The notes under the pieces: generated by a model | What the model was told of the DNA's origin: nothing | Database searches by the model: none | Seen by the model: only the letters and a program-made list of their open reading frames with translations | Shown: positions 14,272 through 64,000 of the stretch, one piece after another | Position numbering within the stretch: the first letter of the stretch is position 1 | Layout of the letters: every line of letters begins with the position of its first letter | Assembly (NCBI RefSeq): GCF_963853765.1 | Contig: NC_088854.1 | Span: 5,828,001-5,892,000, forward strand | Length of the DNA stretch: 64,000 nt | From: Magallana gigas | Taxonomy: Eukaryota | Direction of reading: 5' to 3' | Made by a program: the position numbers and the translations under genes

Positions 14272-14306
<35 letters not shown>

Positions 14307-15419: not shown

Positions 15420-15453
<34 letters not shown>

Positions 15454-21050: not shown

Positions 21051-21109
21051 GATAACAAATATGTATATAAGGAAAAAACAAAAATTCTTACTGATTCGAA
21101 TTTTTAAAA

Positions 21110-22070: not shown

Positions 22071-22079
22071 AACCTTGTC

Positions 22080-23940: not shown

Positions 23941-23941
23941 T

Positions 23942-25117: not shown

Positions 25118-25129
25118 TTTTTCTTCACT

Positions 25130-27875: not shown

Positions 27876-28489
27876 GGACACAATGTATACGGGGAATGAA
27901 ATTTCCCAGATTTATTTATAGTGCAGTTAGGTTTGTTCATTGCTATAAAATATCTGATTTTTCAAAAGAAAATAAATTTTATTGTCAGTAAACACAATCT
28001 TCCACTGGGTCGCATGCTGACTTCACGTGTTTCATACTAATTGTCAGACCATATTAATTAATCACCTAATTGTGTACGGAGTTTTTCGGGGTTTTTTTCT
28101 TCGATTACGACAAGGAGCACACGGCGGATGTAACCGGTGTCGTATATTTAAAGGTCCGCCCCGTAAAAGGGCACGGCCGGACCTTTAATGTTTATATTTA
28201 AGGTCCACTTTTGCTCTAAAACAAATGTGAATACCAAATAGCACATCTACAATCTCTTGTCTACAATCACTGAAAGTTTGAACTCAATTTCTCTTACCGT
28301 TTAGGTAGAGATCCCCGGACAAGCCGATCCTTTGAAAATAGCTAAAACGTCATTATCCCAAGAACGGAAATGACGTCATCAAAATAAAAACTTGAATATT
28401 AAGTTCGGATAAATATTTATTAGATCAATAAGTTTCATGACAATCGGGCGAGCTATTTCCGAGAAATCGCCTGCACAAATTTTGTAAGA

Positions 28490-35164: not shown

Positions 35165-35629
35165 TTAAGGGAGCTTCAGATCGCCTATGTTATCAATCAC
35201 ATTGGGAACGATAACAAAATCGTACACGATAATGAAGAGGACCACGACAACTGCCACCGCCAGGCCAATGATGGAAACCCACTTAGCTAGCCGGCCTCGC
35301 CGGGCGGATTCCTTTTGGTTACCTTTAAAGAAACTTTTTGACGACAGCAAAGAGAGAATTATAGCAGCACATCCAAAAGGAAAATTGAACAAGAGAGTGA
35401 TCAGAGCAAGGGTCAGATAGTTCTGGGGTTTCCTTGAGATTGGTGACGTCTGTCTGCCCGTTGCCTCGCTTTCGGGGTTAGTTTCAGTGACGCTACATTT
35501 CGATTGGATGATGGACGAGTTGGAGACGGACAGGAAGTGAACTGTAGTCCTCTCTTCGTTGTCAGTAATTTTTCTTGGTGGCACTTCTTTTTGTTCATTC
35601 AGAGTTAGCGCATCTGTCTCCATTTTCAT
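35165..35629 (-). CDS. CD225/dispanin (IFITM/PRRT/TMEM233-like) membrane protein, 154 aa, single coding exon
   Basis: PQNYLTLALITLLFNFPFGCAAIILS...GNQKESARRGRLAKWVSIIG plus C-terminal TM; acceptor TTTTCAG at 35640-35646 with an in-frame TGA just upstream of the ATG; AATAAA candidate at 34870-34875. Confidence 0.85.
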   Translation of the reverse strand: MKMETDALTLNEQKEVPPRKITDNEERTTVHFLSVSNSSIIQSKCSVTETNPESEATGRQTSPISRKPQNYLTLALITLLFNFPFGCAAIILSLLSSKSFFKGNQKESARRGRLAKWVSIIGLAVAVVVVLFIIVYDFVIVPNVIDNIGDLKLP

Positions 35630-38600
35630 TATTCAATGTCTGAAAATAATATTTTATAATGTTAATTATAAAGCACTTTGATCAATATCACAACACGACC
35701 CTGTAAAAGTATAGTTCCAGTCTGCGATATTTTTTAATATTCATCATTTCCTGGTGCTCTACCAGCTTACGTCTAAAAAATAATGCTAAAAGGAATAATA
35801 TAAAATCCATATATGTTAAGAACATTAAAAATGGCATTGTTCTCTCTCGATTAAAGTACTAATACCACCTTGTCTTGGTCGTTAATTTCTTACAAACGAT
35901 TACCTGTCACAAACAATTACATGCGATGCAGTTTCATTTCTCAGAAAGTTGCTACACCAATTTTTACCAGAGAGTAATGGTCTTGACTTTCAATGTAAAT
36001 ATTCTCCCATATATTGGAGTAAACATGTTCTCTTTCTAAAATGTGACTCAAAGAAACAATCAGATATAATGTCAACACAGTTGTCATTACTTGTGGGTAA
36101 GGTCAGAGTCTTGTGACAATCTTGTGTTCATTGGGACGTATTTTGCCGATGCGAAACTTGGTATATGACCTGACACTTTGCGGCGATTTCCTAGAGGCTG
36201 AGGACTAATTGGAAGAACTGATTAAATCGAGACTCAAAATGTAATAAATCGTCCTGAATATAGCAAGAATTGCTGATAAAATGTCAGGCAATCGATTAAG
36301 GATGGGTTTTATGGCTTCTGCAAGACATAGCAATGTAAGCTGCCAGCCACCAACAATAAATAGCTAGTCAAACCAAGCCATTGTTATAATATCATTTAAA
36401 CAATAAAATGCTTTCTTTGGTGAATCATTCGGGATATGAAGGTAGCGACATTGCAGAAAAAATACATAACCCGCGTTAGTGGGTTATGTAATTTTTTACT
36501 GCAATGATCGCTACCTGCATTGCCCGAATGAATCATCAAAGAAAGCATTTTATTGTCTATATTAACATCTTTCTTTTAGCCAATTGATAAATTGATTATG
36601 AAAAGTAAGTAAAATTCACTAAATCCCTGTTAATGTACGTAAGTACGTTAGCTAAAAGAAACAGCCAAATCGTCTCCTGTGAGACTTTGAGTCTGACGTC
36701 TTCATGATTATTTCGTGCAGTCCGTGATTTTTCCTAGGTAGTTGTAGGTCTCGACCAATCGATAAACTGGACGTGTCAATTTTGGTCCTGTCACTTATTT
36801 GTCAGTTTCAGCCGCTGTAGATTTCGACCAATCAATAAACGGGGCGTGTAGATTTCAGTCTGGCTGTTTCTATAGAGCTATGAATTAACTATAAGTTTCC
36901 GTAAGAAATAAAGGGAATAATCCTTGGTAGATGTAAATATATCCTGATATTGTTTTCTTCCAACATGAGTTGTTTCTTAAAGCGGACTGGCAATCTGTAT
37001 TGTTGAGTGTCACATGAATGCTATGACATAGAATGTCTTGTATACTTGAAATTTGTTTTCGCTTTTATTGCTTTTTCTTTTTATATTTAACCACTAACGG
37101 TGAGATTTAAGACTGCATTAACACAGGAACAAAGAAATGACAGCAAAGCAGTGTTTTTAATTCAATGGCTTCTTACCCCCAACCCTATGTTGTTACATAG
37201 ACATTAATAGCCTACTATCCCTTCAGGACAGAAGTGGGTTCTCAAAAGGTTTTTTTGAGACATCTTTTTATAAAACATAAAATAATTAGAATAAAATAAT
37301 TCGACGATATTTAAATGTTTTATGTCAGATAAAATTATAAATCTACCTTAATTAATTTTATATTTAAAGATTACTACATGACATTGTATGCTTAAGATTA
37401 TCATTAGCGAGATTTAACACAGATAAGAATAATTATTGATGTTTTTTATAAAAATATTTTACTGAATCAATAAAGTATTCGTCAAAATCCGTGTTTAGTA
37501 TCATGTCTTTATCCACAATGTCATGAAGCGCCGAACTGAACACCCTTGACGAACAAGTTGACAATATTAAATGTCTAGCAGTATTCGCAATACGTTTGAT
37601 ACGAATGATTATAAATCTAATCTCCTGCAAAGACATTTGAGGTCTGATATTGTTTCGATGTTTAGCGTGACCATATAAGAAAAATACCCAACGGGGATAA
37701 AAAAGAGGTTGATTAGGAGCTCAATGTGAGAAATTGGTATTACAGTCAGTTATATTTAATTGCTGATATGAACTTGCTTTCACAGATTCTAAGTTACGAG
37801 TTAGTCTATACTGATGATCGCGGTACTTCAATAATACATAGGAAGTGTTTAAATAAACATCATAATAATTCTCATAGAATATATATGTACTCATAGATAT
37901 AATTTTTCGTTTGCCTAAAATGTCTGAATGTTATATGTACACGAACTTCTTATGAAAATTAAAAAGTCCAATTACAGTGAGATAATTTTGGGTTTTTTAT
38001 TTTATTTTAAAAGCTATCAAATACATGATAAAAATATTCGAAAAAGTCAAATTTCTCATACCCTTTTATCAAAATCGTCAGCATAAATTTGTTAATACAA
38101 TGTTGTTAAAATTGGTGGCTAATGCATGCAAGAAGAATATTTAGCCTGTGAGAACTGTCGTATTGTGTTTTGGTGATGTCACTTCAAGTATGATTACATA
38201 TAACGTTTGTTCACCCAGATATTTTTCTTTTCGTACAGACGCATGGTTGAAAAAAAACTTCAAACTTAATAAAGTTAAAATTTTTAATTAAACTTTGAAT
38301 AAAAAATATTTGATTTTGAACTTGCGTATACCTATTTACATGATTGTATTAAGTGATGAAAAGAAATTGAAGAAAAAAAACACACGTTAAATTGACAACA
38401 TCAAAAGTATTTTATTTGGCGATTTGAAATGAATTAAGATACCTAATCAATTGTTTTTTAGTGTAATTTTTGTTTTTTTTTGTTCCTTCATCTATGTCAA
38501 ACACGAGCAACGTTATAAATGTGTCACCGTTTCCTTGGCGACGGGTCTTCAGAACAATTTTGTTAATCATGGGAATTTCATGTCCCTTAATGAGATTTGC

Positions 38601-42232: not shown

Positions 42233-42367
42233 NNNNNNNNNNNNNNNNNNNNNNNNNNNNNNNNNNNNNNNNNNNNNNNNNNNNNNNNNNNNNNNNNNNN
42301 NNNNNNNNNNNNNNNNNNNNNNNNNNNNNNNNNNNNNNNNNNNNNNNNNNNNNNNNNNNNNNNNNNN
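42233..42367. other. Assembly gap (135 N)
   Basis: Run of N. Confidence 1.
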
Positions 42368-44627: not shown

Positions 44628-45023
44628 ACGACAATATTTCTTTATAAGCCATAGCACTTTGGGAAATTTATTTCCATTTTCTGGTGGACTCATGAAATCT
44701 ACCATAGTAGAATACCAGTGTTTAATATTTGTAGATTATTAATTTAAAAATTGACATGATACAATTCATTTCTAAGAGCATAATATTTTTCAGAAGAAAA
44801 AAAATAAGTATTTTCTATTTTTCCACAAGACCACAAAAATTTATTAATTAAAGTCCATCTAAAATGGTCTTTATTCAAAATACAATTACGTCTAGGTCTA
44901 GTTTCCAGTAAGGTTCGCCATAGGAGATAAGCGAAAATAAATAGATATTCTCGTTATAAAGAAAAAAATCTATATCTAATACAAGAAAATATATTCATTT
45001 CAATGTTTGATTTGATTTTTCAG

Positions 45024-45103
45024 AAACCTCTGTCAGGGCATACAAAAACTTTTTGACGTTTACACCAGTGCGGCTATTGTTTCAATCTTTAGCTGTGCAT
45101 TTG
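45024..45103 (+). CDS. Exon encoding a signal-peptide-like segment (IQKLFDVYTSAAIVSIFSCAF)
   Basis: TTTTCAG acceptor, G|GTAAAT phase-1 donor giving D-C-T-T with the next exon; no in-frame ATG. Confidence 0.5.
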
Positions 45104-46811
45104 GTAAATAAATATATCTCGAACACGATTTCGTTTTTATCTGTCACCTATTGGTGTCAGAATTGTCACATAGTTAGACTGGAACATTATTTATTGCACA
45201 ATCTTTGACTAAGAGTTACTGTGTATACAGGTACAGCTATTCGAAGGCCCAGCCCGTTTCATTTTCACCAAATACATTTTCATCAATTTCATCTTTCGTA
45301 CATCGGTGACCCAGGATTTTTCGTTATTAGAAGCCCTCTTTGAGGTTTTATTGCTTTTGTAGATCGAAATGAATCATCGCCAGAATCATCCATGACAGAA
45401 TTTTGAAATTGGAGGAAAACGCGATTAGATTGCTCCAAACAGAATTTATGATATAGGTGTTTACCCTTACCAACGTGTCGTGTACTAGATTTGTCCCAAA
45501 CTCAGTCCTGCCTACATATCAAATAAATATCACCATGATATCTGCCATCTCGGTAATCATTTGAACGCCCCGCTTTGTATTTTAAAAATTGTTAATTAAT
45601 AGGATAATAGGATAGCCAATGTTAGATAATTAAATGTCTAAACTATTGATTAAAAGATATGATTTACATTGTCTCAGAGGATAAAATCAACGCCTGTAGG
45701 TGTTATTTGTTTGTCATGACACCCCTTCTTGATGCAATTAATATTGACCACCTACTGTCAAACTTGATTCATTATGTACAATATCTAGATAAAAATGACG
45801 GTGGTAATTCACCTCGTTTCTCTAATCATCGGATTAATTTGTTTTGTACAACAATTTGGTGAGTAAATAAATAAATATTGTCATAACTGTTGGGAAAAAT
45901 AAAGTTTAACCCCCCCCCCCCTCATCCACCAAAAAAAAATAATTAATAATCATGATTTGTGTGAGGAAAGGGTGTTCGATATTTCCCTCAGGTGATACCT
46001 TCGGGAAATACAAATTTTCTTTGGGGGATAAATCTTCATATCTCATATCTTCATATCTCCCTCACCCTCATGCAATCAATGTACAATGTTGACGTTTTTA
46101 ATATACATATATAGGACTTATAATTTGATTTATAATATTAACCTCGATCATCGCTGCATGTTCTTTCTTTGTTCGTTCACCGATTGAATAAAGCAATATT
46201 AATGTCTGGACAATGTAATTCGATTTCTTAAAAGTATTTCTGAATAATTAAAGAAACATTTATTTCCTTTTCCAAAGACTGCACAACAATCTCTGAAGGA
46301 TCAACTTCCTATAGTGCTTGCTCATCCCAGAACTATCTCCAAATTACGTATGCAAGTTGGTACTGTAGCTCAACATTCTACTCTAACTCGTGGACAGTGA
46401 CATCTACTGTGAATTCTAACTGTAACTACAATACTGCGTGCACTCTACAAGCCACAAGCAGCTGGCTGGGAGGCGACCCTTGTCCTGGATATATTAAGTA
46501 TCTTGAGTGGAGTTATTCCTGTCATTGTAAGTAATTGTTTCAGGTTGTTGTTTACTGCCAAATTAAAAAAAAAACTCAAGCTTTCTGCACGATTACCTCA
46601 TTTGTGCTGTTAAAAATTTGCTTTAGAAATATTCATGCAACTTGATTCTTTCATCGAATATATTTAAGATCATTTTATTACATGGCTCTTTATTAATTAA
46701 AATGAATGAGCATGTTGATCAAATTAATAACTAAAGGTTTCTAGCTAATCTGAGGTAAAGGATAGAATGTTTCTAAATAATTATGACCTATCTCATGCAA
46801 TAAGTAGACAT

Positions 46812-46891
<80 letters not shown>

Positions 46892-49800
46892 AGCTAGCTA
46901 GGTACAATTAATCAGAAGAAAATTAATATGTGTCAGAGTATTGTTGAATACTTATAATATAATATAAATGCATTGATTAAGCTTTTTGGGGTAGCTGGGA
47001 TTCATGGGATCCTTGCCCCGGAGATTGTACCACCCACAACATTGCCAGGCGCCGAATCTGTGTCAAACCAAATGGAGAGTGTGGATCAGCCCCAGCGGAT
47101 TATAAATCTTGTAAAGAACTGGGATGTTACTGTAAGTATTGTATTCTACCTTTTTCGTATTTTTTGGATCTTGTTTTTATTCCTCATACTATGAGTTGTG
47201 CTTCATAACAGATTTATTACTAAAAAAAACAATTACAGAGTTATTTGCACATTACTATAATGAAAAATAACCAGACTTGACAAAACAAGGGTATTCGAGC
47301 TACACATTGTTTAATTCTTCAATATTCAAGTCTATATAGATAGCTAATGAACCCTTGATATTTAAAATATGTTATAATGAACTGTCCTATCAAGGTTTTC
47401 GTAAATATGATATAGAATACTGTTGTTTCTAGCATCGTCAGAAATCAGCAGAAATACCCCAAATGACAACATCTACTATAGTCTGACCCCCGACTGTTTT
47501 GTCGCCACAGGAAGGACGTCCGTCGCTTTCAGAGCACGAGCAAATAATAACCTCCATATAGCCTTGGGTAGTGAAGACAGCAGCTCAAGTGGTACCCACT
47601 ACGTGATTGTATTCGGACACTCAAGTAACACAGTGTCTTTGCTTAGATTTGCCAGAGGCTCGTCCTCTTGTGACAGCTACACTGGATCGGTCCTGAGGCA
47701 AACCTATTTTGACGAGTTTTGGTTTTCTTGGTCCGGAAGTTACCTCCGTGCAGGCAGGGGCAGTACAGTTGGAAGTGACCAAATCATGAGCTGCTATCAT
47801 GCAACACCATACACAGTCAACTTTATAATGATAGCGACGGGAAGTGGTTCATCAGGGGAATGGAGATTTCCTAATGGTGTGTGCAAAAAACAAATCTCAT
47901 AAATTTGATCGTAACACAGAATTTAAGCATACAAGGAACACGTTTATAATCAATTCACAGTTTGCATAATTTTCTTTGTTTTTTAATTTGTTTAGAAAAG
48001 TAAGTTTCTCAGAGGGCAAACTATTTTCACTAAAAGAATTAAAAAAAACCAACCACACATTTAAGATTGAAATTGGCAAAAAATGTATTTGATAACTCAA
48101 ACATTGAGTAAACTTAACGCTGTTTAAAAAACGCTGAATGGCGTCTTTTACTGGACCTCTGTGAGAGCTATTCACTAAATAACATTTTGTTAAGTACATT
48201 TGTTACCCTTTTCTGTTTGTTTTGTTGACCAGATGTTGCTTGTAAGCACGTTACAAACTCATATGTGAGCATCACCATTGACGACACATCTTGCAACGGA
48301 ATAAGTTCCTACGCGTGTAACTCTGGATACAAACAGGTCGCAGGAAACACCCAACGTACATGTGGATTTGGTGGAATTCTGTCTGGATATCCTCTTGTCT
48401 GCTCTGGTTTGACAAATTTCATTCTCTGTCAGTGTGTTGAGGGCAAATACCAAAGTTATACCAAACAGTATATAAATTGTACCTCTATGGTGGGTAACAG
48501 TTGAAATTGACACCCTGAGCAAATCATTGTCAACCGACTGTTATCTTCCCTAACGGGCACTTTTTATTTTATTTTACTATACTTTCATGTTAAATACTGT
48601 AATCTTATTGGTTTAAACGGAGTTTATAATCCGTTCTATTACCCTCAGCGTAAGTAACACAGTTGCCAATGGGTAATACAACGAATTATTACATGCGGGT
48701 AAATTATGAGCGTACGGTTCACCATTCATTTCACGTCAATTCTACATAAAAGCAGTAAAGTTTTCTTTGAACCTAATACATTCAGTATAATAAAATAAAT
48801 TGTGCCTGTTTGGGAGGGTAACAGTTAAAATTGACACCCCTCGAAAACCATTGTCGAGCGACGCAAATCGCAGGTAGACAATGGTTTTCGTGGGGTGTCA
48901 ATTTCTACTGTTACCTTCCCAAACAGGCACAATTTATATAGTACTGCATGTCTCGATTTTAAAGAACGCATAATTGACTTCTTTCGGAATGACGTGAAAT
49001 CTACGGCGAACTGTACGCGCATTTTTTACGCGCATGTAATAATTCGTGATTATAACCGTTGCCAAATGTGTTACTTACCCTAAGGGTAATAGAACGGATT
49101 ATAAACTCCGTTTAAACAATCGAATTTTAGTATTTAACATGACAGTGTAATAATATTAATTATTTGTTCCAGTTTCCACTTGTAAAATCGACATAGTGTT
49201 CATCGTCGAAGCTTCGGCACACACTTCTTCGATTCATTCAGCATTAATGGCAGCTATTGGCGATTTGGCGGGAAGTCTACAAATTTCAACAAGTGATATT
49301 TTAGCTGGAGTCATTATATATGACGATATTGTGGACCTAAACATCGAACTCAATGACTACTACTCCGCTTCGACACTGGATAGCTCCATTACATCAATAC
49401 CAATATCAAACGCTGCCTCTGCCGTAAACCTGGCTGAAGCTCTACGATTTGGATTTTACGACTTCTTCACATTATCCAAAGGAAACAGATTCACAGCTTT
49501 CAGATATGTTGTTGTGATTGCAAAAACGTATTCTTCACAGACAGGTGCAGCCGTTGCTGATCAAATCAGACTGAATCTGAAAAATCAACTCTTCACAATC
49601 GGTAAACCAATCCCTTTTTTAAGTTTTACGGGATGTCGTTATACCTAACTGTAGATAGAAGTGCTATTCAATCTTAAAAGACCATATCGAACAAATATTT
49701 TTTCCAAAAAAAAAAAAAACAAAAAAACAAAAAAACACCCAGAATATCCTTGCGTAGTTTCTACTTCTTAAATTAAACATATGATTTTTTTCGCATTTTA

Positions 49801-52800
49801 TCTCAGACTTTTTTTTATTTGCAAATACTTTGAACCAGTCAACCAACAGCAAACTTTCAACAATAAAACGTGTCTTTGTATAATAAACAGACATCTATGT
49901 ACTATTTCCTCCGAAGATAAAAAAGTTTATCATGCATCAGAATCGACAGCAGCTATATCCATGGGCTTTCGGAAATAGTTGTGTCTCTGTACAGTAGTCT
50001 TGGAACATTCTTTATAGCCAATAAAAAGTGCGTTATATTGAGTATACATTATAGAATATATGTTTTAATTATCACAGGTATTTCCCCAACTGCATCTCTA
50101 ATCGCCGATTTAAAAGCCATTGCTGGGGATGATAGTAGATACCTTCAAGTTAGTTCGGCGGAGGAATTATATCCTCAGTTTAACACCCTTTTCAACAATA
50201 TAGCTGTATGTCCAGATTTATCCTTTGAGCCGATGACTCTTGGTAAGATCTGCTTTTGTCACAGTACAGATAATTTCATTTGATAAGACTTAAAAACTTG
50301 GGATAACGATAAACATATATATATGGAAACGCAACAAAAATGTTTAGTGATTGTTTTAATGAGTATCAAATTAGCGTTTCTTGAACCATTTGATTGTTCC
50401 AAAATGTGTTCATCAATGAGACAAGTTATACTGGGTTATAAAAAATGTAAGTTTATTTACTAAAATAACTTACTGTACATGTTTTTCTGTAATGTGTATT
50501 CAAATTCAATTTTGCAAATCTATAAAAATACAATCGCCATACAAAGAACTCCATTAAAATAAGTATGGGGTATATTAGGGATATTGAGCATTTGCAGAAG
50601 TAATGAATTTCAAATTATTAAACCCTGAAATAAAAGTGGCAAATATTTCTCATTACACCGCAGTGTAATACGGTGTTTTATGTTGAACAATTTCTTAAAA
50701 TAAAACAACTTCAAAAAAGTTATAATTGGACTACATGTATCTATTTTTCCAGCATAGTTTTTATACTCTCTGTTTTAGATTGTGAGCTGGATATTGTGTT
50801 TATCGTGGAAAGATACAATTTGAGATACACAAAGAGATTTCTGGCGGAGTTGATGGACAATATCACTGTATCAAGTAATGGAATCAGAGTCGGTATGGTT
50901 TTATTTGATTCTGGTGCGTCAACTGTATTTAGACTAAACTCTTACACTTCCTCTGAATCTGTTCGAAGGACCATTGAATCGATCTCAGAGACGAATCAGA
51001 CAGACCATTTGGTTGACAAAGGATTGATAGAAGCCCGGGACAATGTGTTTACGGCCGCTAGAGGTGATCGAACGGATGCCAGTAACTACTACGTAATTAT
51101 TGTTGGACCATTCGAAAGTTATCCGGAAGCAGTAGCAAAGGACATAAGGAGTAGTGGAAGCAACTACGTCTTCTCAATTCGTAAGTGTTTCGTTTTCTGT
51201 TAAAGCCGCGGATTTTTTTAAAATAGACAGCAAATTGATGTTTATATTTTCATCATTCTCAGATATAGGTAACCAGTACCAGACCGAATACCAGAAGGCC
51301 GTTGATACCTGTGGAGACTACACCAAATATACAAACGTGGATTCTTACGAAAACCTGATTAACTTTAAAAATGATATTCTTCAAAAAATCATCTCATGTG
51401 AGAGTGTTAACATAACAATCCCTGGTAAGTGATTACATGAAGCTCATATTTTAAGCCTTCATAAGCATTACAAATTCATAAGATCTATTCTTTAAGTCAT
51501 AGATTTAATAATCTCTAAACCCTCTTTCCAAGATATTTCTTTATGGGTTTGTATGTCATAAAAGAAATTCGTTTATTGTTTGATTTTATTTCGAATATTT
51601 CTAGGTTTTTCAATTGTTGTGTTATATTTTAGACTGCCCATTAGACATTGTTTTCATCATGGAAGATACAGATGAACTGAGTGCCACAGAATTTAACGAC
51701 ATGAAAAGCTTTTTCGTAAGTTTGGTGTCCCGTATGATCATTGGAGACACTGCAATTAAGGTTGGGGTGGTGACTTACGCTGATGGGGCCACCACTGCTT
51801 TCCCGTTGAACCAGTACTCTACAGCCAATGGAGTCATTATGGGAATCACTAACATTAACCAGGGAAGTAATGCCTACAACAGGAGCAGCCGTTACGTGGA
51901 TAAAGCACTGCAATATATCCAGATGGAATTCTTTACCACAGGTAATGGGGACCGTTCTAACGCCGCAAACTACTACATTCTTCTGACTGGTGGACCGTCT
52001 GCTGGAAATAAAGCTGCTGCATTTGGATCGGCAATTAGATCTATAGCTTCCAGTAATCTATTCATTGTTGGTAAGATACACATGTATCATTCTTTTCATA
52101 ATCACATATACAAATTTTTATAATTTTTGAATTATTATATTCGTCCATCAAAATTCAAGCACGTCGCAACAGGGTAATTTTGTTAATCATTCATCATTTA
52201 GATAAAGTTATATATTTGGCTTATTTTAGGCGTTAACATTTCCTCGAGTGATGACCCTGAATTTCTTGATACCGTGGATGACGACAAATACCTGAAGGCC
52301 GTCAACTTTTCTGTTCTTCAATGTATCAACGATGTGGTCGTTCCCAATATCACTCAGTGTCCAGACTCGGTCACCCCGGCTAGTTTAGTCTCTCCAAGTA
52401 AGCTACGAAAGTCTACGAGTTAATCCTCTGCAAAAGAATTCCATGCTTTGAGCCAACAGAAATAATTTTTACAAAGATTGTATCACGTCAGGCTTATAAA
52501 ACTCTAATTTCAGGTTGCCAACTTGATATCGTTTTTATCATGGAAAGAACAGAAACATCCTCCCATGAAAACTACGTGTTCCTGAAAAGTTTCTTCTCCA
52601 ACATAGCAATACAGTTGGATGTATCCAGTAGCACTATACGTATTGGAGTCGTTACGTACGATACAGATGCGTACACAACAATCGCCCTGGACACGTACAT
52701 GACGCCTACAGAAATCAGCTACCAGATTCTGAAATTACAGGAAGGTACAGGCAAAAGAAACATGATCGACAAAGCTTTGATTCACACCAAAAATAACTAC

Positions 52801-55800
52801 TTTACAGCAGCTAATGGAGACCGTGCGAGCGCCGCTAATTATTACGTGTTCGCCATAGACGGCGTAAGAAGTGGTGCCTCTATCCAGGCGGAATATATTA
52901 TGAAAGGATGGCCCAGCACAGTGTTTGCTATTGGTACAATAATTTTATGTTAATAAGTATCATGGTGCATGAAATTAAAGATATTTTGTTTGTCATTCTG
53001 AAAGATAGAATTTATTTTCTAAAGATATATTGTTCTGTCATTGTAGATATAAACAGTGGTTATGAAAAAGAGTATAGAAGAACAGCGGGGGATAATAGTC
53101 GATATTTTCATGCATCTTCTTATGCGAATTTATCCGCCATCGAGTCTGACGTCATAGCAGCCATCACGAAATGTCCTGTTCCACAACCAGTGACCACTAC
53201 TGACGGTTCTCTCATGTTCGCCGATGTCTGTAAGTACTAACCAGGGGCGTACATTTATTTGATATGACTGACCATTTGTCTTAATTTCTTTGCATTGATT
53301 TCATTGAAATGTATCATTTGCTTTACAAATGAACTAATGTTAAGTGATTTTACTTCATACTTTTAGCTGCCCCTTGCTTGAACAGTCTGATCTATTTATA
53401 TCCCGAGGACCTAACAGAAGGAAAAGATGGAGGACAAAGTATGTCACATAACTTAAATTTTGTGTTTTTGGTTGTTTGTTTTCATTTTTAGTGAAACATC
53501 AAATAGCTTTAAAAAAAAAAAAAAAACAATATTCTATCGAGAAGTGAAGAAAAAAGATTGATAAATTCAATACATGAATTGAAATGAATGATCAGGCGAT
53601 TATATCATAACATTTTGATCAATTGTTTTCCTTTTAGACACGATGTACTTGATGACTGATTTTGTGTATACCATAACAAGTTGTTCACGCATCACTTCTT
53701 GGGAATTCTCCCATTGGAAATCTGGATACATTGACTTCATGGTTTGGAGGCCAAGTGGTAGTAATTATAAACTGGTGGCTTACAACACTATCTATGTTTC
53801 AGGTAACTGACAAAACAAACTTTTCCTAAATAAGAATCGAATCACTGTCAAATATGTGTCAAATGTCTTCTAGAAGAGATTTATAATTTCTTATCGAGCA
53901 GAATTATAAATAATACAATAAAAAAAACTGCAGGTAAAAATACCACAACATACACGGTGGTTGAGTACGAGAGGATTGCTGTTCTTCATGGTGACCTCAT
54001 TGGGTGGTAAGAAGATTTCCTCAAATTTGGACAGAACGTCAAAAATGATTTTATGTAGTTTCCTTTTTACATTTTTAATATTTTAAAAGGCGTAGTAAAG
54101 GAGATAACTTAGTTACAAGTGGGCCGTGTTTAGGACCATGTGCGGAGGGATACAAAGCGTCACCAAACAATGTTCAAATTGGAGAGGAGTTCGATTGGAC
54201 TAACTCGGGCACGTCGATAAATGGAACTGCATATGCTATTAAAGCATGCCTAGAAGACAGTGAGTCTAGCAATTATGCATATTAAGTTTGAACTGCTTTA
54301 TGTGTTGTTGTTTTTTTTGCAGTGTTAATACTATTCACAGGGAATTTTATCGAAAAAAGCAACGTTGGAAATATGGATATTCAGAGGAAAAATAACAAGG
54401 AAGGACGTCATCTTGGATACTGCCTCGCTTCATCAGCTAATTTCTAATTCAAATTGTAAAACTAAACACATGCGCCGATTCAATATTTTTTTTATTAAAT
54501 GATTCTTCTTTAAGACCTTCTTCCAGTTAATCCTATTTACGTCTATATTTACAAATTTTATCTCATATGCAATACTTTTACCTTTGCCAAAAATGTTTAC
54601 GAGAGATATCAACAAGTTTGTGAATGCATGTGTAAAAAAGAATTAATCCGGATTTGATCATGAGATCTTATAAAAAAATCATTTATATTGGAATATGAAT
54701 TGGGGCATATGTTGGTATTAACAGATTGAATAAAAAAATATACCTGAAGAAGCGTATCGTAGGACATAGTTATTTACCAGTGCAATTTAAAGACAAATTT
54801 TGGCCCTAATTTTAAACAGGTTTTTGTATAACTATCTAACACTTTTTCAACTGTTATCACATTTCGTTATATGCTATATAAGTTATAATAAATTTAATCA
54901 TGAGCATAAACAATTTCCATATTACAGATACAGCAATGGCATTTTCTACACCGACAATCGGCGCAAAGATACCTGACCATTTACCTGCCGGATCTTTTGT
55001 TACGTTACTGGAGCCAGATGGCGCAGACTACGCTGAAGTCGTTAATTATACCGTCTTGCAACACCCTTCGTATCCAAATTCGATGGAATATTTTAATGTT
55101 GGCGAAACATCGGGTATTGATCTTTGTTTAGAATTTTTAATTTATTTGTATTTTGTTCTATTACAAATTGACGGATTTCTTTTTTCTCCAGGCCAAATTA
55201 CAGTGGCTAAAAGGCTTTTGAAAGCCAAAGTGAAGAGTGACTATGCCTTCCTTGTCAGGGCTAAAGATTCTTGTAATACCACTGCAACGGCGACAGTTTC
55301 TATTCAAACACAGAATATGGTAAGTTTAGAGATACTCTAACAATGTTTTTCACACAGCGTCTGAAAGCTAAACGTATTACATTCTCTTTTGTATGAACAT
55401 TTTGCTTTAATTCTTTTAATGCTAGCCCCCTGAAGTCCTTGGTATGCCCAATATTATATCCATAACTGAGGAAACCGAGGGAGATACAGTATTGTATACA
55501 ACAATTGTGGAAGATCCCAGCGGGGATAGCGTTTGTTGTTCATTAGAGAGTACGTTACCCAAGACTAACAATTTCGTGGTTTTCGGCAATGACACAGGAA
55601 TCCGTGTCAATTATTCCATCATGGCCAGCGACGCACCTGCATTTTCTTACAGACAATATAATTCTTACATCGTGAAGTTATGTTGTGACGACGACGAAGA
55701 CAAATCTACAGGAGTACTCATTGTCAACATCAAGAAACCCAACAAAACAACAACGTATGAGCCACCAGGTGAGTCTGTCTTTATTTCCGATGTCGTATCA

Positions 55801-56161
55801 GTAATATTCAGAAATAAAAGAGAAACAAATAATATTAAAAATGTTTTCAAAAATTTGTATTTATTCTAAAAATAATTTGAAATACCGGGACACATCTTAT
55901 CATATTAAATATAATTTATGTAGGTTACCTATATGAACAGGTCATTAGCGTGTCTTTTTATTAAACTGGATGTAGCATAAATACTTAGTAAAGCAGTGTA
56001 CATAATGTACTACTCCTTCTAACAAATTTTATATATATTTTTTTTCAGGGTGGTTCATGATTTCAATAGCAATATCATGTACACCTATTTTCCTCATGGC
56101 TTTGATGGCGTGCGTTGTACTGATCCAAACCATGTTTGTCCCAGAACAAAGAGCTGATTGA
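45024..56161 (+). CDS. 21-exon gene for a ~1,560-aa mosaic type-I membrane protein: SP-SUEL lectin-TSP1-FAMeT-like-CCP-4xVWA-unnamed domain-2x cadherin-like-TM
   Basis: GT-AG exons join in frame: 45024-45103, 46278-46526, 46982-47131, 47433-47876, 48233-48406, 49173-49601, 50078-50242, 50779-51180, 51263-51424, 51633-52070, 52230-52397, 52514-52933, 53047-53229, 53367-53438, 53638-53802, 53934-54006, 54090-54259, 54928-55113, 55192-55319, 55426-55768, 56049-56161 (TGA). Start codon unresolved. Confidence 0.85.
46278..46526 (+). CDS. Exon: SUEL/rhamnose-galactose-binding lectin domain
   Basis: C..ISEG....C.....LQITYA.W.C...C...C.L.A.SSWLGGDPCPGYIKYLEWSYSC; 249 nt, phase 1-1. Confidence 0.85.
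46982..47131 (+). CDS. Exon: thrombospondin type-1 repeat
   Basis: WGSWDSWDPCPGDC....ARRRIC......C...YKSC; 150 nt, phase 1-1; AAG acceptor is weak. Confidence 0.8.
47433..47876 (+). CDS. Exon: farnesoic acid O-methyltransferase-like (Methyltransf_FA) domain
   Basis: FRARANNNLHIALG...HYVIVFG..N..S.LR...FDEFWFSW.G..LRAG.G...ATG.GSSGEWRF; 444 nt, phase 1-1. Confidence 0.8.
48233..48406 (+). CDS. Exon: CCP/sushi domain
   Basis: C......Y.CNSGYKQVAGNTQRTC...G.LSGYPLVC; 174 nt, phase 1-1. Confidence 0.8.
48578..49149. mobile_element. Intronic fold-back element with long imperfect arms and a nested 143-bp hairpin (48795-48937)
   Basis: CATGTTAAATACT...TTTAAACGGAGTTTATAATCCGTTCTATTACCCT mirrored at ~49068-49141; inner ATAAATTGTGCCTGTTTGGGA...TCCCAAACAGGCACAATTTAT. 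Confidence 0.85.
49173..50242 (+). CDS. VWA domain 1 (exons 49173-49601, 50078-50242)
   Basis: CKIDIVFIVEASAH...GVIIYDD...NLAEAL...GNRFTAFRYVVVI...LFTIGI. Confidence 0.8.
50779..51424 (+). CDS. VWA domain 2 (exons 50779-51180, 51263-51424)
   Basis: CELDIVFIVE...IRVGMVLFDS...FRLNSY...GDRTDASNYYVII. Confidence 0.85.
51633..52397 (+). CDS. VWA domain 3 (exons 51633-52070, 52230-52397)
   Basis: CPLDIVFIMED...EFNDMKSF...IKVGVVTY...FPLNQY...GDRSNAANYYILLTGG. Confidence 0.85.
52514..53229 (+). CDS. VWA domain 4 (exons 52514-52933, 53047-53229)
   Basis: CQLDIVFIME...IRIGVVTYDT...GDRASAANYYVFAIDG...VFAIG. Confidence 0.85.
53367..54259 (+). CDS. Unnamed beta-rich extracellular domain (exons 53367-53438, 53638-53802, 53934-54006, 54090-54259)
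   Basis: C..ITSWEF...SGYIDFMVWRPSGSNYKLVAYN...ERIAVLHGDLIGW; exon phases consistent; I cannot assign a named family. Confidence 0.7.
54928..55768 (+). CDS. Two degenerate cadherin-like domains (exons 54928-55113, 55192-55319, 55426-55768)
   Basis: FNVGETSGQITV, LVRAKD, QNMPP, ITEET, VEDPSGD, KLCCDD. Confidence 0.75.
56049..56161 (+). CDS. Last coding exon: TM helix and ~6-10-aa cytoplasmic tail
   Basis: GWFMISIAISCTPIFLMALMACVVLIQTMFVPEQRAD-stop. Confidence 0.8.
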
Positions 56162-56238
56162 CAACTTGTTCCAATATTGTTTTTCAAACAGCAATGTTTC
56201 TATGTTTCTGTATTTACTAGTATTCATTATATCTCTGA

Positions 56239-56248
56239 AATAAATAAA
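56239..56248 (+). terminator. Polyadenylation signal (overlapping AATAAA pair)
   Basis: AATAAATAAA about 80 nt after the TGA. Confidence 0.65.
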
Positions 56249-57326
56249 AACTGTTTCACGTGTCCAATTATTACCGCCATGAAAGAACTAAGTACCTGTG
56301 AATGGTATTTAGCCATGTACTGAAATTAATTCATTATGAATCTGTTGTGAGCAAGTGAATATTAAGACATCAAAAGGACAGAGAAATAACTACTGTTATT
56401 CTGTAATTGCTGCACTTGTGAAAAAAGTCAACCAGCGACACAAATGGAGAGTTTTTCTTAAAAAACATCAATTTTCTATTGAATCTATCATAAAACATTT
56501 AAATAAAGATGTGTATTTGCTCTAAAATCTAAGTGAAAATCTGTGTAATTTTAACAAATTATCAAATGAAAATCTTTCTTTGGATAAACGAGTTGGGTCA
56601 TATGCCATCGCAAACCATGAGAGATATCTCTTTTCTTAATTCTATCTTGTATGTGTCCATATAATATCGTAGGTGTTACCTACAAATGGCACCTCAAACG
56701 TTCGTCTTGCGTTGTATATGCAATAAAGTCAATACTATTTCCTTGCCCCACGATCAGCCACGGCCGCCAGGACTGATAAAATCTGCTTGCATGATCACTA
56801 AACATGCCTGGTCATTGTGACAGAGGCTTCAGACATTGTGTACACTGAACCAAATTTCTAATTGATCACCCACGGTAATGTATTTACTGTGTACATTCAT
56901 TATACATGTATACCCATCAATTTTCCCTATTTGATGCTGCCAATTTTGCAGAGTCTGATTTTTTGGGTCACCACACTGTGGGATTCCGATTCCGTATCAC
57001 TCAAGCTTTGTTCTTTAAATAAAGATGCATGGTCCGATTTTTTGTCTATTACAGTTTTAAATAATTTTCCATAAAAACAAATCATCTTAGAAAGACATTT
57101 TCGCCTATTTAAACCAGCAGTATGGATCTCCTTTCAAAGTTAGAAATTTTCAAAGTAAATAAAAACAGTTTCTTTATGGGTATACAAATAAAAAAAAACA
57201 AAAACAAAAATGCATCATAGGAATGTTAATGAAAGGGAAGGAACCGTTTAGTTTTCGTTCACCGAATATCTGGGTTTCTCACAGCGTCTACACTGCGATT
57301 AGCTGCGTTCCTAGGGCGCGTCGACG

Positions 57327-57556
57327 GAGCTCTCTTGGCGCTGTTGTAGACCATACGGCTCTGTTGTAGACCATACGGCTCTGTCACGGAGCTCTCGTGG
57401 CGCTATTGTAGACCATACGGCTCTGTCACGGAGCTCTCGTGGCGCTGTTGAAGACCAAACGGCTCTGTCACGAGCTCTCGTGGCGCTGTTGTAGACCATA
57501 CGGTTCTGTCACGGAGCTCTCGTGGCGCTGTTGTAGACCATACGGCTCTGTCACGG
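57327..57556. repeat. GC-rich 42-bp minisatellite, ~5.5 copies
   Basis: GAGCTCTCGTGGCGCTGTTGTAGACCATACGGCTCTGTCACG starts at 57389, 57431, ~57472 and ~57514. Confidence 0.85.
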
Positions 57557-58437
57557 CGACCTCCCTCTGTTTCTACTGTGTGATTATCAGAACACAGAGC
57601 CACAGCGAGTACTTAGTGCATAGCATTCTATTATGTTCTAGGCGATCCCACCGTGACAAATGAAGATGCCGTTGCGTCGTTACGCCGCTGTAGGAGGCTC
57701 TTTTGCGTGAACCTTGGCGTTTTACATTATTTAAGTGCGCAGCGGAATCGTCATTAGGAAGCAGCTTCGGTGTGGCAGGGGTTTAAGGTGATGATTGATG
57801 TAGAATAAGTAACATAATTCTACAGTAGAAAAATGTAACGATATAAATGTGAAACATTTAATGCGGTTTAATTTTTTTTCTATTAATTGATAGAAATATG
57901 TCATTGAATTAAATACTTTTTCCGTACGTAAGGTTATTGACGTCTTGTAGTAAATGTGTTGTGCGGCTAACAATTATAATGTTTACAGAAAAGATTGGGG
58001 TTAACGAAATACGTGGAAAACGTGATAAAAAATCTCTCAAGATTTGCGATCGTATATGATTTTTCTCCAACTCGTTGCCAAGGCTCGGGGATAGAAATCG
58101 CACACCTCGTTGGATGAAAATCAGATCCTATATTTATTTGTCTTCTCGTCGGGGTAACTGATTCCCACTTTAAAAAAGTTACAAACGAAGCATTGCCCTT
58201 GATCCCTGGTTCCGTCCCGAAACCTTGACCTCTGTAAATATCACAAACACTTCCAGTTTGGTTGAATTTCGCTCAGATTATTTTGATTGCTTTACGTTGC
58301 CGATGAAAATGACATTACACTTATAGAAGAGAAAAGTTACATCAAAATAACGTTTCCTTTGGATTGCTTAATATTTATAACTATGTCGAGGACCAAATAA
58401 AGAGCAAAAAAGTGAGTACAATCTTTGTTAGAAACAA

Positions 58438-58735
58438 CAGGCACGTAGCATCGGGGGGGGGGGGGGGGGGGGGGGAGGGGGGGCAGGGCCTCCCCCCACT
58501 TTTTTGCGCAGCAAAGATTTTTCTCAAATTTACATACAAAAAAATAGGAAATAACCGGTGAAATTTAAGTTAAAGGTATCCAACCGCCCCCCCCCCCCCT
58601 CCGGATTAGGATTTTCATAATTTTGCAAAGTAACCTTTTTTTTTTTTTTTTTTTATTTTGCTTGTCAAGATTTTTTGGATGAGTACGCCCCCCCCCCCCC
58701 ACACACACACTGTCAAAAACGATGCTACGTGCCTG
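58438..58735. mobile_element. 298-bp MITE with 16-bp TIRs and apparent 5-bp TSD AACAA
   Basis: CAGGCACGTAGCATCG...CGATGCTACGTGCCTG flanked by AACAA on both sides; G/C homopolymer-rich interior. Confidence 0.7.
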
Positions 58736-61700
58736 AACAATGCAGTCATTAATATTCCAACGGCTCTGGCTGTTTTGTTTATCTCTTTAAATTATCACCA
58801 AAGACTAATATCAATCACCAAAAATGCCAATCACATTGAGCACGTGCAGGAAAATACCAATTTCATGTTTTGACGTTTCGTCACGGGTAATTGATTTCAA
58901 TCGGTTTTGTTTATTTTATCTTTTGCTATTGATGAAAAGACATATATCAGTTACGAAATGTTGAAAATTTTTACATTATTTTATTTCGTAATTTTTAAAA
59001 TTATTCTATTTATCAAAATGAACAATTAGAAGTTTTGTTGAGTGTAGATCATATGTCTTAGGTTTTGGATGGATTAGATAGATTAGATTCCTTTTTTTCC
59101 AGCTTAGGAATACCTTTTCTAGAGAATGATTCGAGTTTAGAGAAGTAGTGTTTCGAAGTTTGAAGAACTAAAAAAAAATTAATGTAATAATCTAGTACAT
59201 GAAAATAATCTTTTATATTTCCATGTGGATTGATCAATGGCATGCAACTACTTGCCATGGGTATACATTAGGGCACTTGTTATATTTAAGCTAATTATGG
59301 ATTGAGTTGCGAATAATCAAATCAAAAAACCTGTTGTGATATTCCAGACCAAAAATGGAGTCAAGGGACGTCTTAAAGTTCTCTCTACCCCAGTCTAATT
59401 AAGATTAGATCTTTCATGCTCCTGTATTTAATATGTCGCTGTGACACATCAAAGACAGGAGTGTAAAGGATCTTATTTTAATTAGATTGTCTCTACTCCA
59501 GGATGATTTGAGTGATTATTTATCAACAGTCAGATTGCATTGAACTTGGAGTAAAACACATTCACCATTTCTCGACATACAGATCTATAACTGAAAATTC
59601 ATCTCTGAAATTCCAAAAATATTTTATATAGTCCTTAAACCCGTAAATCAGCAGTGTTCAGTGACAAAATTATGTAAACACCAACATTGAATTGAGTCTT
59701 AATTTATGGATGAACTAATAGGTTTTACTTGTGTTTTAGCTATACTCTGTACTAAGATATCCTGGATTTACATTTTGCTTAATTGCATTATATTTATAAA
59801 CACCTCAGGATTCAAACGATGTTCATTCAAAAGTATGAAAAATTTCCAAGATTTCTTCAGTCAAAACGCGCCTGTTAGCTTATCAGGTTTCAATACAATC
59901 ACAGGGGCCAAGCCCGTTTAAACGTTACATTGAAATTAATGTTAAAACGTGCTTGGTCCTTGTGCGGAGATTTGTATTGCAGCAAGCCCGGATGATAACG
60001 TTGTAAAATTGTGCGATGTATTCCGAATGGAGAAAAGATGTAAACATTCTCCATTAATAATCTCCGTAAGGAATCTGTATTCGTTCCTGTGAATTTTTCC
60101 GAGTGAGAGATGATAATGTGTCAATGAAATTATCTTGGAAATTATCCCTTTCAATCTAACTATTTCAATTGCACTTCTTTCACAGGTGTGTGTCTTTTGA
60201 TTGAAAATCGTCCAAATGAGGTGCATAAATATCTTGGGACAGACTATAAATTAAAATTTAACTGCATGTCAGACTTCCAAAAGAGTCTAGTGACTTTCTT
60301 TTCTACCTGCAAGGTACTGTTTGATAATAAACCTTTTATATGAATAATTGAAGTAGTCAAAAGAAAAATGTTAATATAGACTAGAAAATGCTTTCTTTGA
60401 TGATTCAAACGGTCTTTGAAGGCAGTTGTCTAGTGCAAGAAAAATAAAACTCGGTTAAAGCGAAGTCTGAGGGACCAATTGATTTACTTCATTATATCCG
60501 TTTAACGAATTCGTAATAATAACTATAGCGAATTCACTATATACACGTTTTCTTTTACCAGACTATAATTTTTGTTAATTGAGGCTTAAAATAAAAATAC
60601 ATTACTTTGATACCTTTAATAATCGGATTGTGAATTGAAAATGATTTATGAAAATAAATACATTCAAACCATTATGTTTAATGGTAGCGCAAACTTTTTT
60701 TTTTAACTGTAAAGAAATTCGTTTTAAAAGTTTTAAATTTCGTTATTATTTACCTCTACAGGACTCAAAATGAGTTCGCTATATCCGTAAATTCGTTAAA
60801 TTCGAATTCGTTACAACCGTAAAATTTTACAAAGATTTGTTAAAAATTTTACCGGGGAATAAAAAAACTTAGCTACTCAGTATATCCGAGAATTCGCTTT
60901 ACCCGTGTTCGTAATAAACGTGTTTTACTGTAGTATTATGACTTCGGTTGTCACGTTTTCAAAATTATTGGTGCCAATTTGCGTACGCGTGTACTGGCAA
61001 CTGTTTAGGGTCTTGTTGGGCTGTAATTTGTAACACCGCCTCTTTGTATTAATTAAGAACGTATTTCATTGTTCACATGGGGTTTTATCTTGCTTTAAAT
61101 AGCATATTAAATGTATTGCTATTGTATCGGTACTCGCTGGAGTGTTTAAATTTTTTCAGTCTCAAACGAGGTTATCTGAGAATTTATAGAGATAATCAAG
61201 ATTGTAACATATATATTACCAGAGTAATTATTACGGTCGGGTCTTTAATTATATGTCATGACAACCTTTTATCTTAATCTGAGATCGTCCCATTACCGTG
61301 ATCAAAGTACAAGAACGGATTTTTAATGTCCAGTACCTAGTCCAATGGCGAATACATACATCATTTTAGGAGGCATCACAATTTATTTAGTGATTTTAGT
61401 CCAGCTGACTGGTGAGTTTATTTATTGATTTATATAAAACTCCTTCTTTTTATTATATCGATGTTTTTGGGAAGGGGGGGGGGGGTCTCTGAGGTAACAA
61501 GCTAGAACTAGATGGTTTTTAGAGAATGGGTACCAGGGATTGTAATTAACAGAGGTTTTAGTTTTCCACAAAAAATTTTGTAAAATTATTTAAAAAATTT
61601 CTTTTTACAAATATTGATTCATAAATACAATAAAATATACTCACAAAAATTGTTTTGTTCGTTAAAATTAATTAAAACAAATGAATTTTTATTTCCAAAT

Positions 61701-63185
61701 ATTTCCCTAAATAAACGATATGACATGTTTTTGCATGCAAACAAATTTATTAATTTCCTTTTTTACATCAATTCTTCAGATCCCTTTTTCCCACTTGAGT
61801 TATTTTGGCTTAATTTATTTATATTAATTTCTCGTGTCTACAATTAAACTAAATTTGTCAACAAAATATATAACTCTTTATAAATGATTAATAAAAAAAA
61901 TAAAGACAGTGTTTATTTAAAGGAAATTTCCAAAGATATGCAATTTCAAGGTTTTTTTCTTTTTTGGAAGGCTGTGTGAAGATTACATGTAATATCTTAA
62001 ATATTTCTGCGAATAATAATGCCGGAACTGCAAAATGTTGATACTTTTGCCCTTTTGCTTCGATGAATAAAAATCACTGGAATATGTGTATTATCTGGTG
62101 TATCAAACTGAAAGTAAAAGAGAGTAAACAGGGTACCCTGGCCTCGATAAAATTCCAGTGTTGAATTAGATAATCAAAAGACATACGCTCTAATGGAAAA
62201 TGAAAAATAGGTTCTTTATAGTCATCAGCCATATTATTAGACTACATTTATGACTTTTTGAAGAGCCATCGATAAAGCACATCAAACAATCCAGTATATG
62301 CTTCTCTATCGGGCACAAATATTGCGATGATTCATTCAATAATAATAATAATAATAATTGGATAGAGCAGCATGGCCAATTCTTTGTTAAGGACTAACTT
62401 AAGAAGTTTTAGCATTACGACAAAAATATCCAGATTTACTTCGCCAGCGTGAGGTGACTCTCCTCACGTCATGCTCTATAAAACATATCATCTTCAGAGA
62501 AGACATTTTCTGTTTGTGTATTAATTGAAACTCTGATGCCGTGATATGTTAGTAGGTAAAAACGTTTTCAAAAACAAAACCCAACAAAAACCCGACAATA
62601 AATTTTCTCAAGCATTTGGCTCTAAAAAGAAATCAAGTTATTTTTTTTTTTCATTTAAAGTAAAAGAATGTGTTAAATCATACGAAAGCCCATTGAGCTT
62701 ATTATCGAGAGTAAAATGATGAAATTGTTGCAAATAAACGGGAAAGTTTTCCGAATTGACGCGAAGCGTGGTAGTCGTGTTCAATAGAAATGCGCGTACA
62801 ATGTCTGTGTATTACTTTATTTTGCCTACATACGAAACATTCCCGCTATTTGAATTAATATAGTCTTTTACGTAACGGGTGTGACTTTTTAAAGCGATAC
62901 GGATATATTTAATAATCAAAAGTGTCTGGTAAATGTATAGGTCTTGTTCATGAACAGAAGAAAGTGACAGAAAAATATTCAGATTTAGCCATCAAATACA
63001 AATATTCATATTTTTTTTAGAATATTATTTAATTTATGTTGAAAAAATAATTAAAATATAAAAGTTTTTCCCTTTATTCAAATGTTTTGAAAATTTTTGT
63101 TACCGTTTATATAAAAAAATCACTGTACCGTATATCCTATTGATCCCTATAATATATCACTTTAGTTTCTTGGACAGCTTGTCTA

Positions 63186-63216
<31 letters not shown>

Positions 63217-64000
63217 ATCTCAGAATGATTTATACAGGGTCATTAATTTATTCCCATTATATTAAACTAGATACAAACAGGCCTTCTGCAACCTTACATT
63301 GTTTAAATGGTATGAAGTTTTTGAAACTAGTCTAGTGATTAATTTTTAATTACCTTACATATGAAAAACGACATGTGTATTCTTTTTTTCAATTTACATA
63401 ATACAGTTTATTAATTGTATGTAGTTGTGTAGATTTATACATGTACCTACATGTACAAGCAATATATATATAATGTTCACAAGGGGCTCGTAACATAAAG
63501 CATGCTAAGATTTTGATTTAAGTAGGGTCATAAGTAGGACTTAGGCGGAATCTTAGGACCTGCATAAGTCCTGCTTAAGTATGTCTTAATATACCGTAAC
63601 ATAAAGCAAACTTAGCAATGTCTTAGCTAAGTCATGTTTATTTTAAAAAGTATAAACGTATTTTTCATTTCTTTTGTCGAATTTGGATGTATTGGTAATA
63701 AAATCATATTTTTATAGATACACGTGCATGACATCTTTGATATTAGATGGGGGTAGATGTAATTAAATTTTACATACACAACATTAAAGGTGGCATGAGT
63801 ATATATACGTTTGTACCAAACATAACTCAAAGCGATGGATCTCGGGCAATATATTCAGGTTATTGTTGTTGCTTCTGTTTTGACGAATATTCACTATTTT
63901 AGTCGTTCTCGAAGACTGCCTGTGGGGTAATATCATGAGGCCGTAAGAACTTGATATAATTATATAGTGAATTTCTTTTTATCTTTTGTTTTACATCTTA

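Follow-up and report, generated by a model that had tools for sequence, protein, structure and literature searches.

The window analysed here comprises 64,000 nucleotides (nt) of Magallana gigas (NCBI RefSeq assembly GCF_963853765.1, contig NC_088854.1, positions 5,828,001 to 5,892,000 of the forward strand), and it carries on its + strand an intact, transcribed gene for a single-pass type I membrane protein of 1565 residues. The gene consists of 21 coding exons that join into a single frame between positions 45795 and 56161 of the window, separated by introns of 78-766 nt, all of which are GT-AG and 17 of the 20 of which lie in phase 1. Its coding total is 4698 nt, i.e., 1565 codons plus a TGA at 56159-56161, and neither the exon bodies nor the split codons contain a stop. 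Exon boundaries were taken from a reading of splice sites and phases, with lengths and split codons checked singly, and similarity searches were run either with single exons or with database paralogs as proxies.

Transcript evidence was gathered over positions 45000-50999, from (i) three contig runs belonging to three separate studies and (ii) one raw poly(A) run. A preliminary description of the locus, made by reading the letters alone, had proposed oyster RNA as a check on its splice junctions, and all seven that lie in this range match their predicted positions exactly (45858>46278, 46526>46982, 47131>47433, 47876>48233, 48406>49173, 49601>50078, and 50242>50779), so that exons 1-8 are joined in contigs of the three studies. 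RNA depth in the same range is concentrated on the exons and is close to zero in the introns, except at a repeat in intron 5. Over the exons, first mates of the raw-read run lie on the - strand, which is the pattern of a stranded library and places the origin of the RNA on the + strand. The sequence-run share for 46250-56200 was ∼0.3 in 14 runs from seven studies (two recorded as RNA and 12 guessed to be RNA) and ∼0.75 in runs that are probably DNA. Further, a segment of M. gigas OY970746.1 is 100% identical to window positions 51345-64000 (12656 nt), and an independent gene call on OY970746.1 yields a product of 1565 residues that ends at the equivalent of window position 56161, which is the same length as our model. 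The window thus corresponds to OY970746.1:5828001-5892000. The single frame of 21 GT-AG exons given in the preliminary description therefore stands, whereas its start at 45024 does not, because the 5′-most RNA contig begins near 45784 and the ATG at 45795 opens a hydrophobic signal peptide; RNA depth over 45000-45599 was zero in contig and raw runs. Two alternative acceptors were likewise discarded, namely 47442 for exon 4, where RNA fixes 47433, and 53874 for exon 16, which homolog alignment contradicts.

The repeat in intron 5 (48400-49000) is abundantly transcribed in its own right, with a word depth of 500-2100 in RNA contigs as compared with 7-70 on exons. Its reads fall on both strands, with many loose ends that run into other contexts, some of them ending in a tRNA-like sequence (GGTTCGAATCC). 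ARAGORN reported no tRNA gene in this repeat, which is probably a SINE-like element.

The N-terminal head of the protein is encoded by the first five exons, all on the + strand, as are those that follow. Exon 1 (45784-45858) contains a short 5′ untranslated region, the ATG, and the 21 codons plus 1 nt of the signal peptide, and the RNA contig that spans its junction with exon 2 has 74 nt on the exon-1 side. Exon 2 (46278-46526), with both junctions in RNA, encodes a SUEL-type (rhamnose/galactose) lectin domain that scores 40.5 bits with Pfam PF02140 (gathering cut-off, 31.4; E 3.6e-10; profile positions 3-80 of 80). Among solved structures in the PDB, this exon matches rhamnose-binding lectins (RBLs), namely 5h4s and CSL3, and the RBL domain of latrophilin, with 5h4s, 2zx0, and 2jx9 among the entries matched and with alignments that span residues 38-81 of 82 only and hence the C-terminal half of the domain; the N-terminal half is diverged. 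Within the C-terminal half, the motif ...C...GDPC.G.YKYLE..Y.C is kept, as aligned with three 5h4s repeats and two CSL3 repeats.

Exon 3 (46982-47131), the junctions of which were seen in three RNA runs, encodes a thrombospondin type 1 repeat (TSR). While its score with Pfam PF00090 lies under the gathering cut-off (17.1 versus 21.6 bits; E 0.0065; match 2-49 of 49), the exon has a WxxWxxW motif with the invariant W2, W5, and W8, together with six cysteines, and a family profile run against the PDB gave 25 matches, all of them TSR proteins (properdin, with the best E value of 3.5e-6, and thrombospondin-1 repeats), which confirms the TSP1 assignment. Exon 4 (47433-47876), with its acceptor fixed by RNA, passes the Pfam threshold for Methyltransf_FA (FAMeT-like; PF12248) with 55.4 bits against a cut-off of 24.2 (E 7.2e-15), and a sequence search found no solved structure for it. 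This domain is reported from CPAMD8-type thioester proteins (PMC9363628) and from an abalone shell-matrix protein (PMC6003135), and it occurs in many other extracellular mosaics, in company with fibrinogen, C-type lectin, MAM, and kringle domains, which argues for a binding module here, rather than an enzyme. Exon 5 (48233-48406), again with both junctions in RNA, is the least certain part of the head: its CCP-like domain (Pfam Sushi, PF00084) reaches 16.3 bits, under the 20.7 cut-off (E 0.013), and the 19 matches of its family profile are exclusively sushi-domain proteins, albeit weak ones (E 1e-3 to 0.4). The four-cysteine frame is present, and the conserved Trp is a Leu in this gene and a Trp in the Ostrea and Saccostrea members. 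Thus, among the head domains named in the preliminary description, the SUEL-type lectin, TSP1, and FAMeT-like domains were borne out, and the evidence for CCP is consistent but weak.

The next eight exons encode four VWA domains, each split over two exons, and all four copies exceed the PF00092 cut-off of 23.8 bits (36.1, 64.2, 76.2, and 57.5 bits for VWA 1-4, respectively), as had been read from the sequence. VWA 1 is formed by exon 6 (49173-49601; Pfam E 9.6e-9) and exon 7 (50078-50242), the latter recognised through collinearity with homologs, and the junctions of both are in RNA. VWA 2 is formed by exon 8 (50779-51180; E 2.4e-17), the acceptor of which is in RNA, and exon 9 (51263-51424), a phase-1 GT-AG exon with 83-96% identity to homologs. 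VWA 3 comprises exons 10 (51633-52070; E 4.6e-21) and 11 (52230-52397), and VWA 4 comprises exons 12 (52514-52933; E 2.7e-15) and 13 (53047-53229), with exons 11 and 13 resting on homolog alignment and phase. Following the DIVFI strand, the DxSxS motif is replaced by EASAH, ERYNL, EDTDE, and ERTET in VWA 1-4, respectively, and none of the four VWA domains therefore has a canonical metal ion-dependent adhesion site (MIDAS). In the four VWA domains of the Crassostrea and Magallana copies, no DxSxS was found. Only the VWA3 of an O. edulis paralog (residues 743-756) retains this MIDAS motif, as DDSTS, where it has been lost in the Crassostrea and Magallana copies.

The membrane-proximal part begins with a domain of 160 residues, here called domain X, which is encoded by exons 14-17. 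Its first 24 codons form exon 14 (53367-53438), which is recognisable via homologs only; exon 15 (53638-53802) is 98-100% identical to M. gigas paralogs, with a synonymous divergence (dS) of 0.03-0.07; exon 16 (53934-54006) has an acceptor placed by homolog alignment and runs from phase 1 in to phase 2 out; and exon 17 (54090-54259) ends the domain. The AlphaFold2 (AF2) model of domain X is all-beta. Domain X gave nothing meaningful in Pfam at E<=10, and its model returned no Foldseek match at E<=1e-3 and only generic jelly-roll folds, at a background-level Z<=8.6, in a structure comparison. The model would make the domain beta-rich, with low confidence, and the domain left unnamed in the preliminary description keeps that status.

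Exons 18 (54928-55113) and 19 (55192-55319) encode the first and second halves, respectively, of an extracellular cadherin (EC)-like domain. Their family profile matches 45 cadherin chains (best E 1.4e-6; protocadherin-9, 4.9e-5), with the EC signature over the whole length, and PF00028 scores 22.7 bits in a full-length paralog, under the 28.8 cut-off (match 2-91 of 93). The calcium motifs LDRE and DxNDN are absent from these exons, with LKAK/KSDY and QTQNM in their places. Intron 18 (55114-55191), which separates the two exons, is 78 nt long, in frame, and stop-free, such that its retention would add 26 residues to the cadherin-like domain. Exon 20 (55426-55768) encodes a strongly conserved membrane-proximal domain with two CC pairs (CC...CC). 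The preliminary description had regarded it as a second cadherin-like domain, and this assignment was not confirmed, as exon 20 showed no match at E<=10 in the PDB and nothing meaningful in Pfam, and its hhalign comparison with the first cadherin-like domain gave a probability of 0.1%, although its fold may yet be cadherin-like. The proposed two-cadherin stalk is thus half supported, by a first domain that is cadherin-like and lacks the calcium-binding motifs. Exon 21 (56049-56161) encodes the transmembrane (TM) helix and an 11-residue tail ahead of the TGA, and its end coincides with that of the independent gene call; a TM helix with a tiny tail is common to all full-length homologs, from four genera, and the earlier statement that there is no signalling tail was right. 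Two overlapping AATAAA hexamers at 56239-56248 (+), read from the sequence, form a putative poly(A) signal.

The window gene is a member of a family the relatives of which are predicted in RefSeq and UniProt, under the name "collagen alpha-3(VI) chain(-like)," in M. gigas (XP_034303091.2, XP_034303094.2, XP_034303089.2, and A0A8W8KLL6), M. angulata (XP_052720338.1), C. virginica (XP_078326552.1), O. edulis (XP_048773613.2), and Saccostrea. The family members are 1511-1567 residues long and are collinear with the window gene, exon by exon, from the SUEL domain to the TM helix. None of the family proteins retrieved is the window paralog itself, and identities per exon range from 44 to 100%. In M. 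gigas, at least six paralogs form a tandem cluster at 5.87-6.19 Mb of OY970746.1. The first coding exon of the next paralog downstream, which encodes a signal peptide, lies at 61345-61413 (+) of the window, and this paralog is the 2848-residue M. gigas "collagen alpha-3(VI) chain isoform X1," with two head-VWA-X units in one open reading frame. Since C. virginica has a 2847-residue counterpart with 69% identity at full coverage, the double length looks like a conserved trait and not like the product of an artificial fusion.

A library of 1.8 billion proteins, searched with the FAMeT exon, gave 787 matches, of which a single representative, from Saccostrea, was collinear; within the 150 best representatives of the library, Methyltransf_FA was combined with VWA and the remaining architecture in the oyster protein only. 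Word searches with the whole protein, its C-terminal part, and the double-length form found, beyond oysters, only vertebrate collagens VI and XII, via their VWA domains, although such searches are limited by length and shared words, so that distant relatives may escape them. A literature search with the family identifiers (LOC and XP numbers tried) and for the domain combination found no paper. In all searches made, the family thus appears to be oyster-restricted, known from automatic database predictions under a misleading name, and free of any published study. The preliminary description knew of no named protein with this architecture; this holds in that nothing characterised was found, and fails in that the proteins are already predicted and named as collagen alpha-3(VI) chain(-like), with the gene itself having a 1565-residue call.

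Divergence along the gene was estimated by the Nei-Gojobori method, exon by exon, against three M. gigas paralog loci. In the head (SUEL, TSP1, and FAMeT), nonsynonymous divergence (dN) was 0.21-0.33 and dS ranged from 0.8 to saturated, giving a dN/dS ratio (omega) of 0.2-0.28; in CCP, dN was 0.035-0.10, dS was 0.59-1.4, and omega was ∼0.07. The VWA block (dN, 0.037-0.066; dS, 0.30-0.47; omega, 0.11-0.14), domain X (dN, 0.005-0.015; dS, 0.29-0.36; omega, 0.02-0.05), the first cadherin-like domain (dN, 0.035-0.11; dS, 0.22-0.40; omega, 0.11-0.26), and exon 20 (dN, 0.004-0.023; dS, 0.23-0.27; omega, 0.02-0.08) follow, with a lowest single-exon dS of 0.03. Every exon is under purifying selection, since dN/dS is below 1 in each of them. 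From the uneven dS along the gene, it follows that the 3′ two-thirds have been homogenised among the paralogs, whereas the heads are old and distinct. Moreover, the introns within 51.6-53.2 kb co-align with those of paralogs at 90-94%.

Structural comparisons with known systems place the protein apart from each of them. It shares VWA arrays, many of them lacking a functional MIDAS, with vertebrate collagen VI alpha-3, and these arrays explain how the automatic name arose; the sole non-oyster match in a word search seeded with the Saccostrea protein was a collagen VI alpha-3 from a fish, at 21% identity. However, Pfam Collagen (the Gly-X-Y helix) has no match in any exon or in the full-length paralogs, and the oyster protein, which has neither the triple helix nor the Kunitz and FN3 domains of collagen VI alpha-3, is instead anchored by a TM helix and carries lectin, TSP1, FAMeT, and CCP modules in its head. 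With latrophilins (ADGRL) and rhamnose-binding lectins (SUEL, CSL3), it has in common an N-terminal SUEL/RBL-type domain, here on a membrane protein, but it differs from latrophilins in having no olfactomedin, GAIN, or seven-transmembrane domains and in a lectin domain that is well conserved in its C-terminal half only. It makes the same extracellular use of Methyltransf_FA as CPAMD8-type thioester proteins and the other Methyltransf_FA mosaics, but has no macroglobulin or thioester domains. Unlike cadherins and protocadherins, it has one EC-like domain, with replaced calcium motifs, and no catenin-binding tail. Only the oyster "collagen alpha-3(VI)-like" predictions have the same architecture, and they share its chromosomal cluster, with the window gene as a family member.

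We consider it moderately probable, from the domain content and the pattern of divergence, that the gene product acts in adhesion or recognition at the cell surface, does not itself signal, and combines (i) a paralog-specific ligand-binding head, (ii) contacts made by its VWA domains, and (iii) a conserved partner-docking stalk. The N-terminal head (SUEL, TSP1, and FAMeT-like), which differs between paralogs, would bind the ligand, which may be a glycan or a protein. Lacking a MIDAS, the VWA domains may contact other proteins without metal or form oligomers, as those of collagen VI and matrilins do. The strongly conserved, concertedly evolving membrane-proximal part would keep the head off the membrane and probably docks to a common partner, with any signalling being done by that partner. 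That the heads diverge while the stalks are homogenised fits a recognition role without proving one. The glycan-sensing head proposed in the preliminary description, as part of a pattern-recognition, adhesion, or biomineral-matrix receptor, remains a candidate interpretation.

Several observations weigh against this interpretation. Because the SUEL domain has diverged in its N-terminal half, glycan binding by this head is not assured; the YGR sugar-site motif is presumably sited in that half. No exon showed an omega above 1, so that the head gives no sign of diversifying selection, and its divergence could stem simply from an absence of gene conversion there. Reads cover junctions 1-7, whereas homology, intron phase, and the independent call are the basis for junctions 8-20. 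The AF2 models of the stalk are poor, that of domain X being a low-confidence beta-sandwich with a predicted local distance difference test (pLDDT) score of 56.5 and that of the cadherin-like pair having a pLDDT of 33. The interpretation leaves room for a secreted form as well, which may be made without the TM helix: for paralogs in Magallana and Ostrea, the RefSeq models labelled isoform X2 stop at the junction of exons 18 and 19, short of that helix.

Such truncated models also bear on a different explanation, which we regard as unlikely, namely that the protein is a scaffold of the extracellular or shell matrix, shed or TM-less, in the extracellular matrix of the mantle or in shell, where its VWA domains would form networks and its lectin would bind glycosylated matrix. 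With four VWA domains in tandem, the protein is reminiscent of collagen VI, of matrilins, and of shell proteins that contain VWA, and Methyltransf_FA is found in the abalone shell-matrix protein cited above; however, the TM helix and tail are kept in all full-length homologs of the four genera, under purifying selection, the regions that usually mark shell-matrix proteins (acidic, low-complexity, or chitin-binding) are missing, and the identifier search found these loci absent from the literature. The divergent heads and homogenised stalks of at least six clustered genes could, alternatively, point to germline-encoded variable immune receptors, whose differing lectin-type heads would recognise microbes on haemocytes or epithelia, with a common stalk and a shared co-receptor. 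SUEL, TSP1, and CCP are complement- or lectin-type modules, and Methyltransf_FA occurs in relatives among the thioester proteins, but the omega of the head (0.15-0.34) never exceeds 1 and the cluster is small when compared with the known expanded immune families of oysters, and we find this explanation quite doubtful. A role as a gamete or larval cell-cell recognition molecule, in fertilisation or settlement, would suit a fast-diverging lectin head in a family found in oysters only in all searches, given that eggs were the first source of SUEL-type lectins and that broadcast spawners evolve such heads fast; overall selection is nevertheless purifying, and we judge this role very improbable.

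A further alternative is that the gene model is an artefact of prediction, or the gene a paralog in decay, with neighbouring independent genes or a pseudogene read as one frame; the fused or double-length models in the family (2848 residues in M. gigas, 2847 in C. virginica, and 1462 in Saccostrea) speak for it. Against it stand the seven junctions confirmed by RNA from three studies, the 1565 stop-free codons, an omega below 1 in every exon, the compact introns of 78-766 nt, and the lack of paralog exons in the 45 kb upstream, which leave it largely refuted and scarcely credible. A bolder reading would make the cluster a small germline repertoire, in which old and distinct lectin/TSP1/FAMeT heads are carried on a common VWA-X-cadherin-TM stalk maintained by gene conversion, with different glycan, microbial, or gamete ligands and one shared partner; this reading strikes us as rather a long shot.

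Elsewhere in the window, several other features were recorded. A DIRS/Ngaro-like retroelement occupies 20500-25200 (-), with a reverse transcriptase containing YLDDFIFAA, a tyrosine-recombinase-like open reading frame, and a duplicated segment (22702-23115 and 23172-23528), and a non-LTR element with a 467-residue open endonuclease/reverse transcriptase stretch lies at 25270-27900 (+). At 35168-35632 (-), a 155-residue open stretch with two terminal hydrophobic helices has the look of a CD225/dispanin-type exon and is the closest non-repeat coding candidate upstream of the gene. A repeat family at 14300-15600 is found also in the introns of two paralog loci, at 76-85% identity, and its many overlapping matches suggest an internal tandem structure. 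A run of N occupies 42233-42367, and a minisatellite at 57300-57700, downstream of the gene, has units that, in several frames, translate into recurring peptide-like strings (ALSRSSRGAVVDHT...).

Shuffled extracellular genes are very numerous in bivalves, and the present finding is thus a useful annotation, rather than a surprise, modest and solid in kind. It corrects a misleading database name, since these family proteins, having no collagen helix, are not collagens; it defines what appears to be an oyster-restricted family of membrane-anchored mosaics; and it gives an exact gene model, supported by RNA at seven junctions. The pattern of divergent heads on a homogenised stalk lends itself to direct tests of a part in matrix assembly or in recognition, be it for immunity, settlement, or fertilisation, and, if the cluster were indeed a germline repertoire, it would represent a lineage-specific route to variable recognition, built from modules not combined before.

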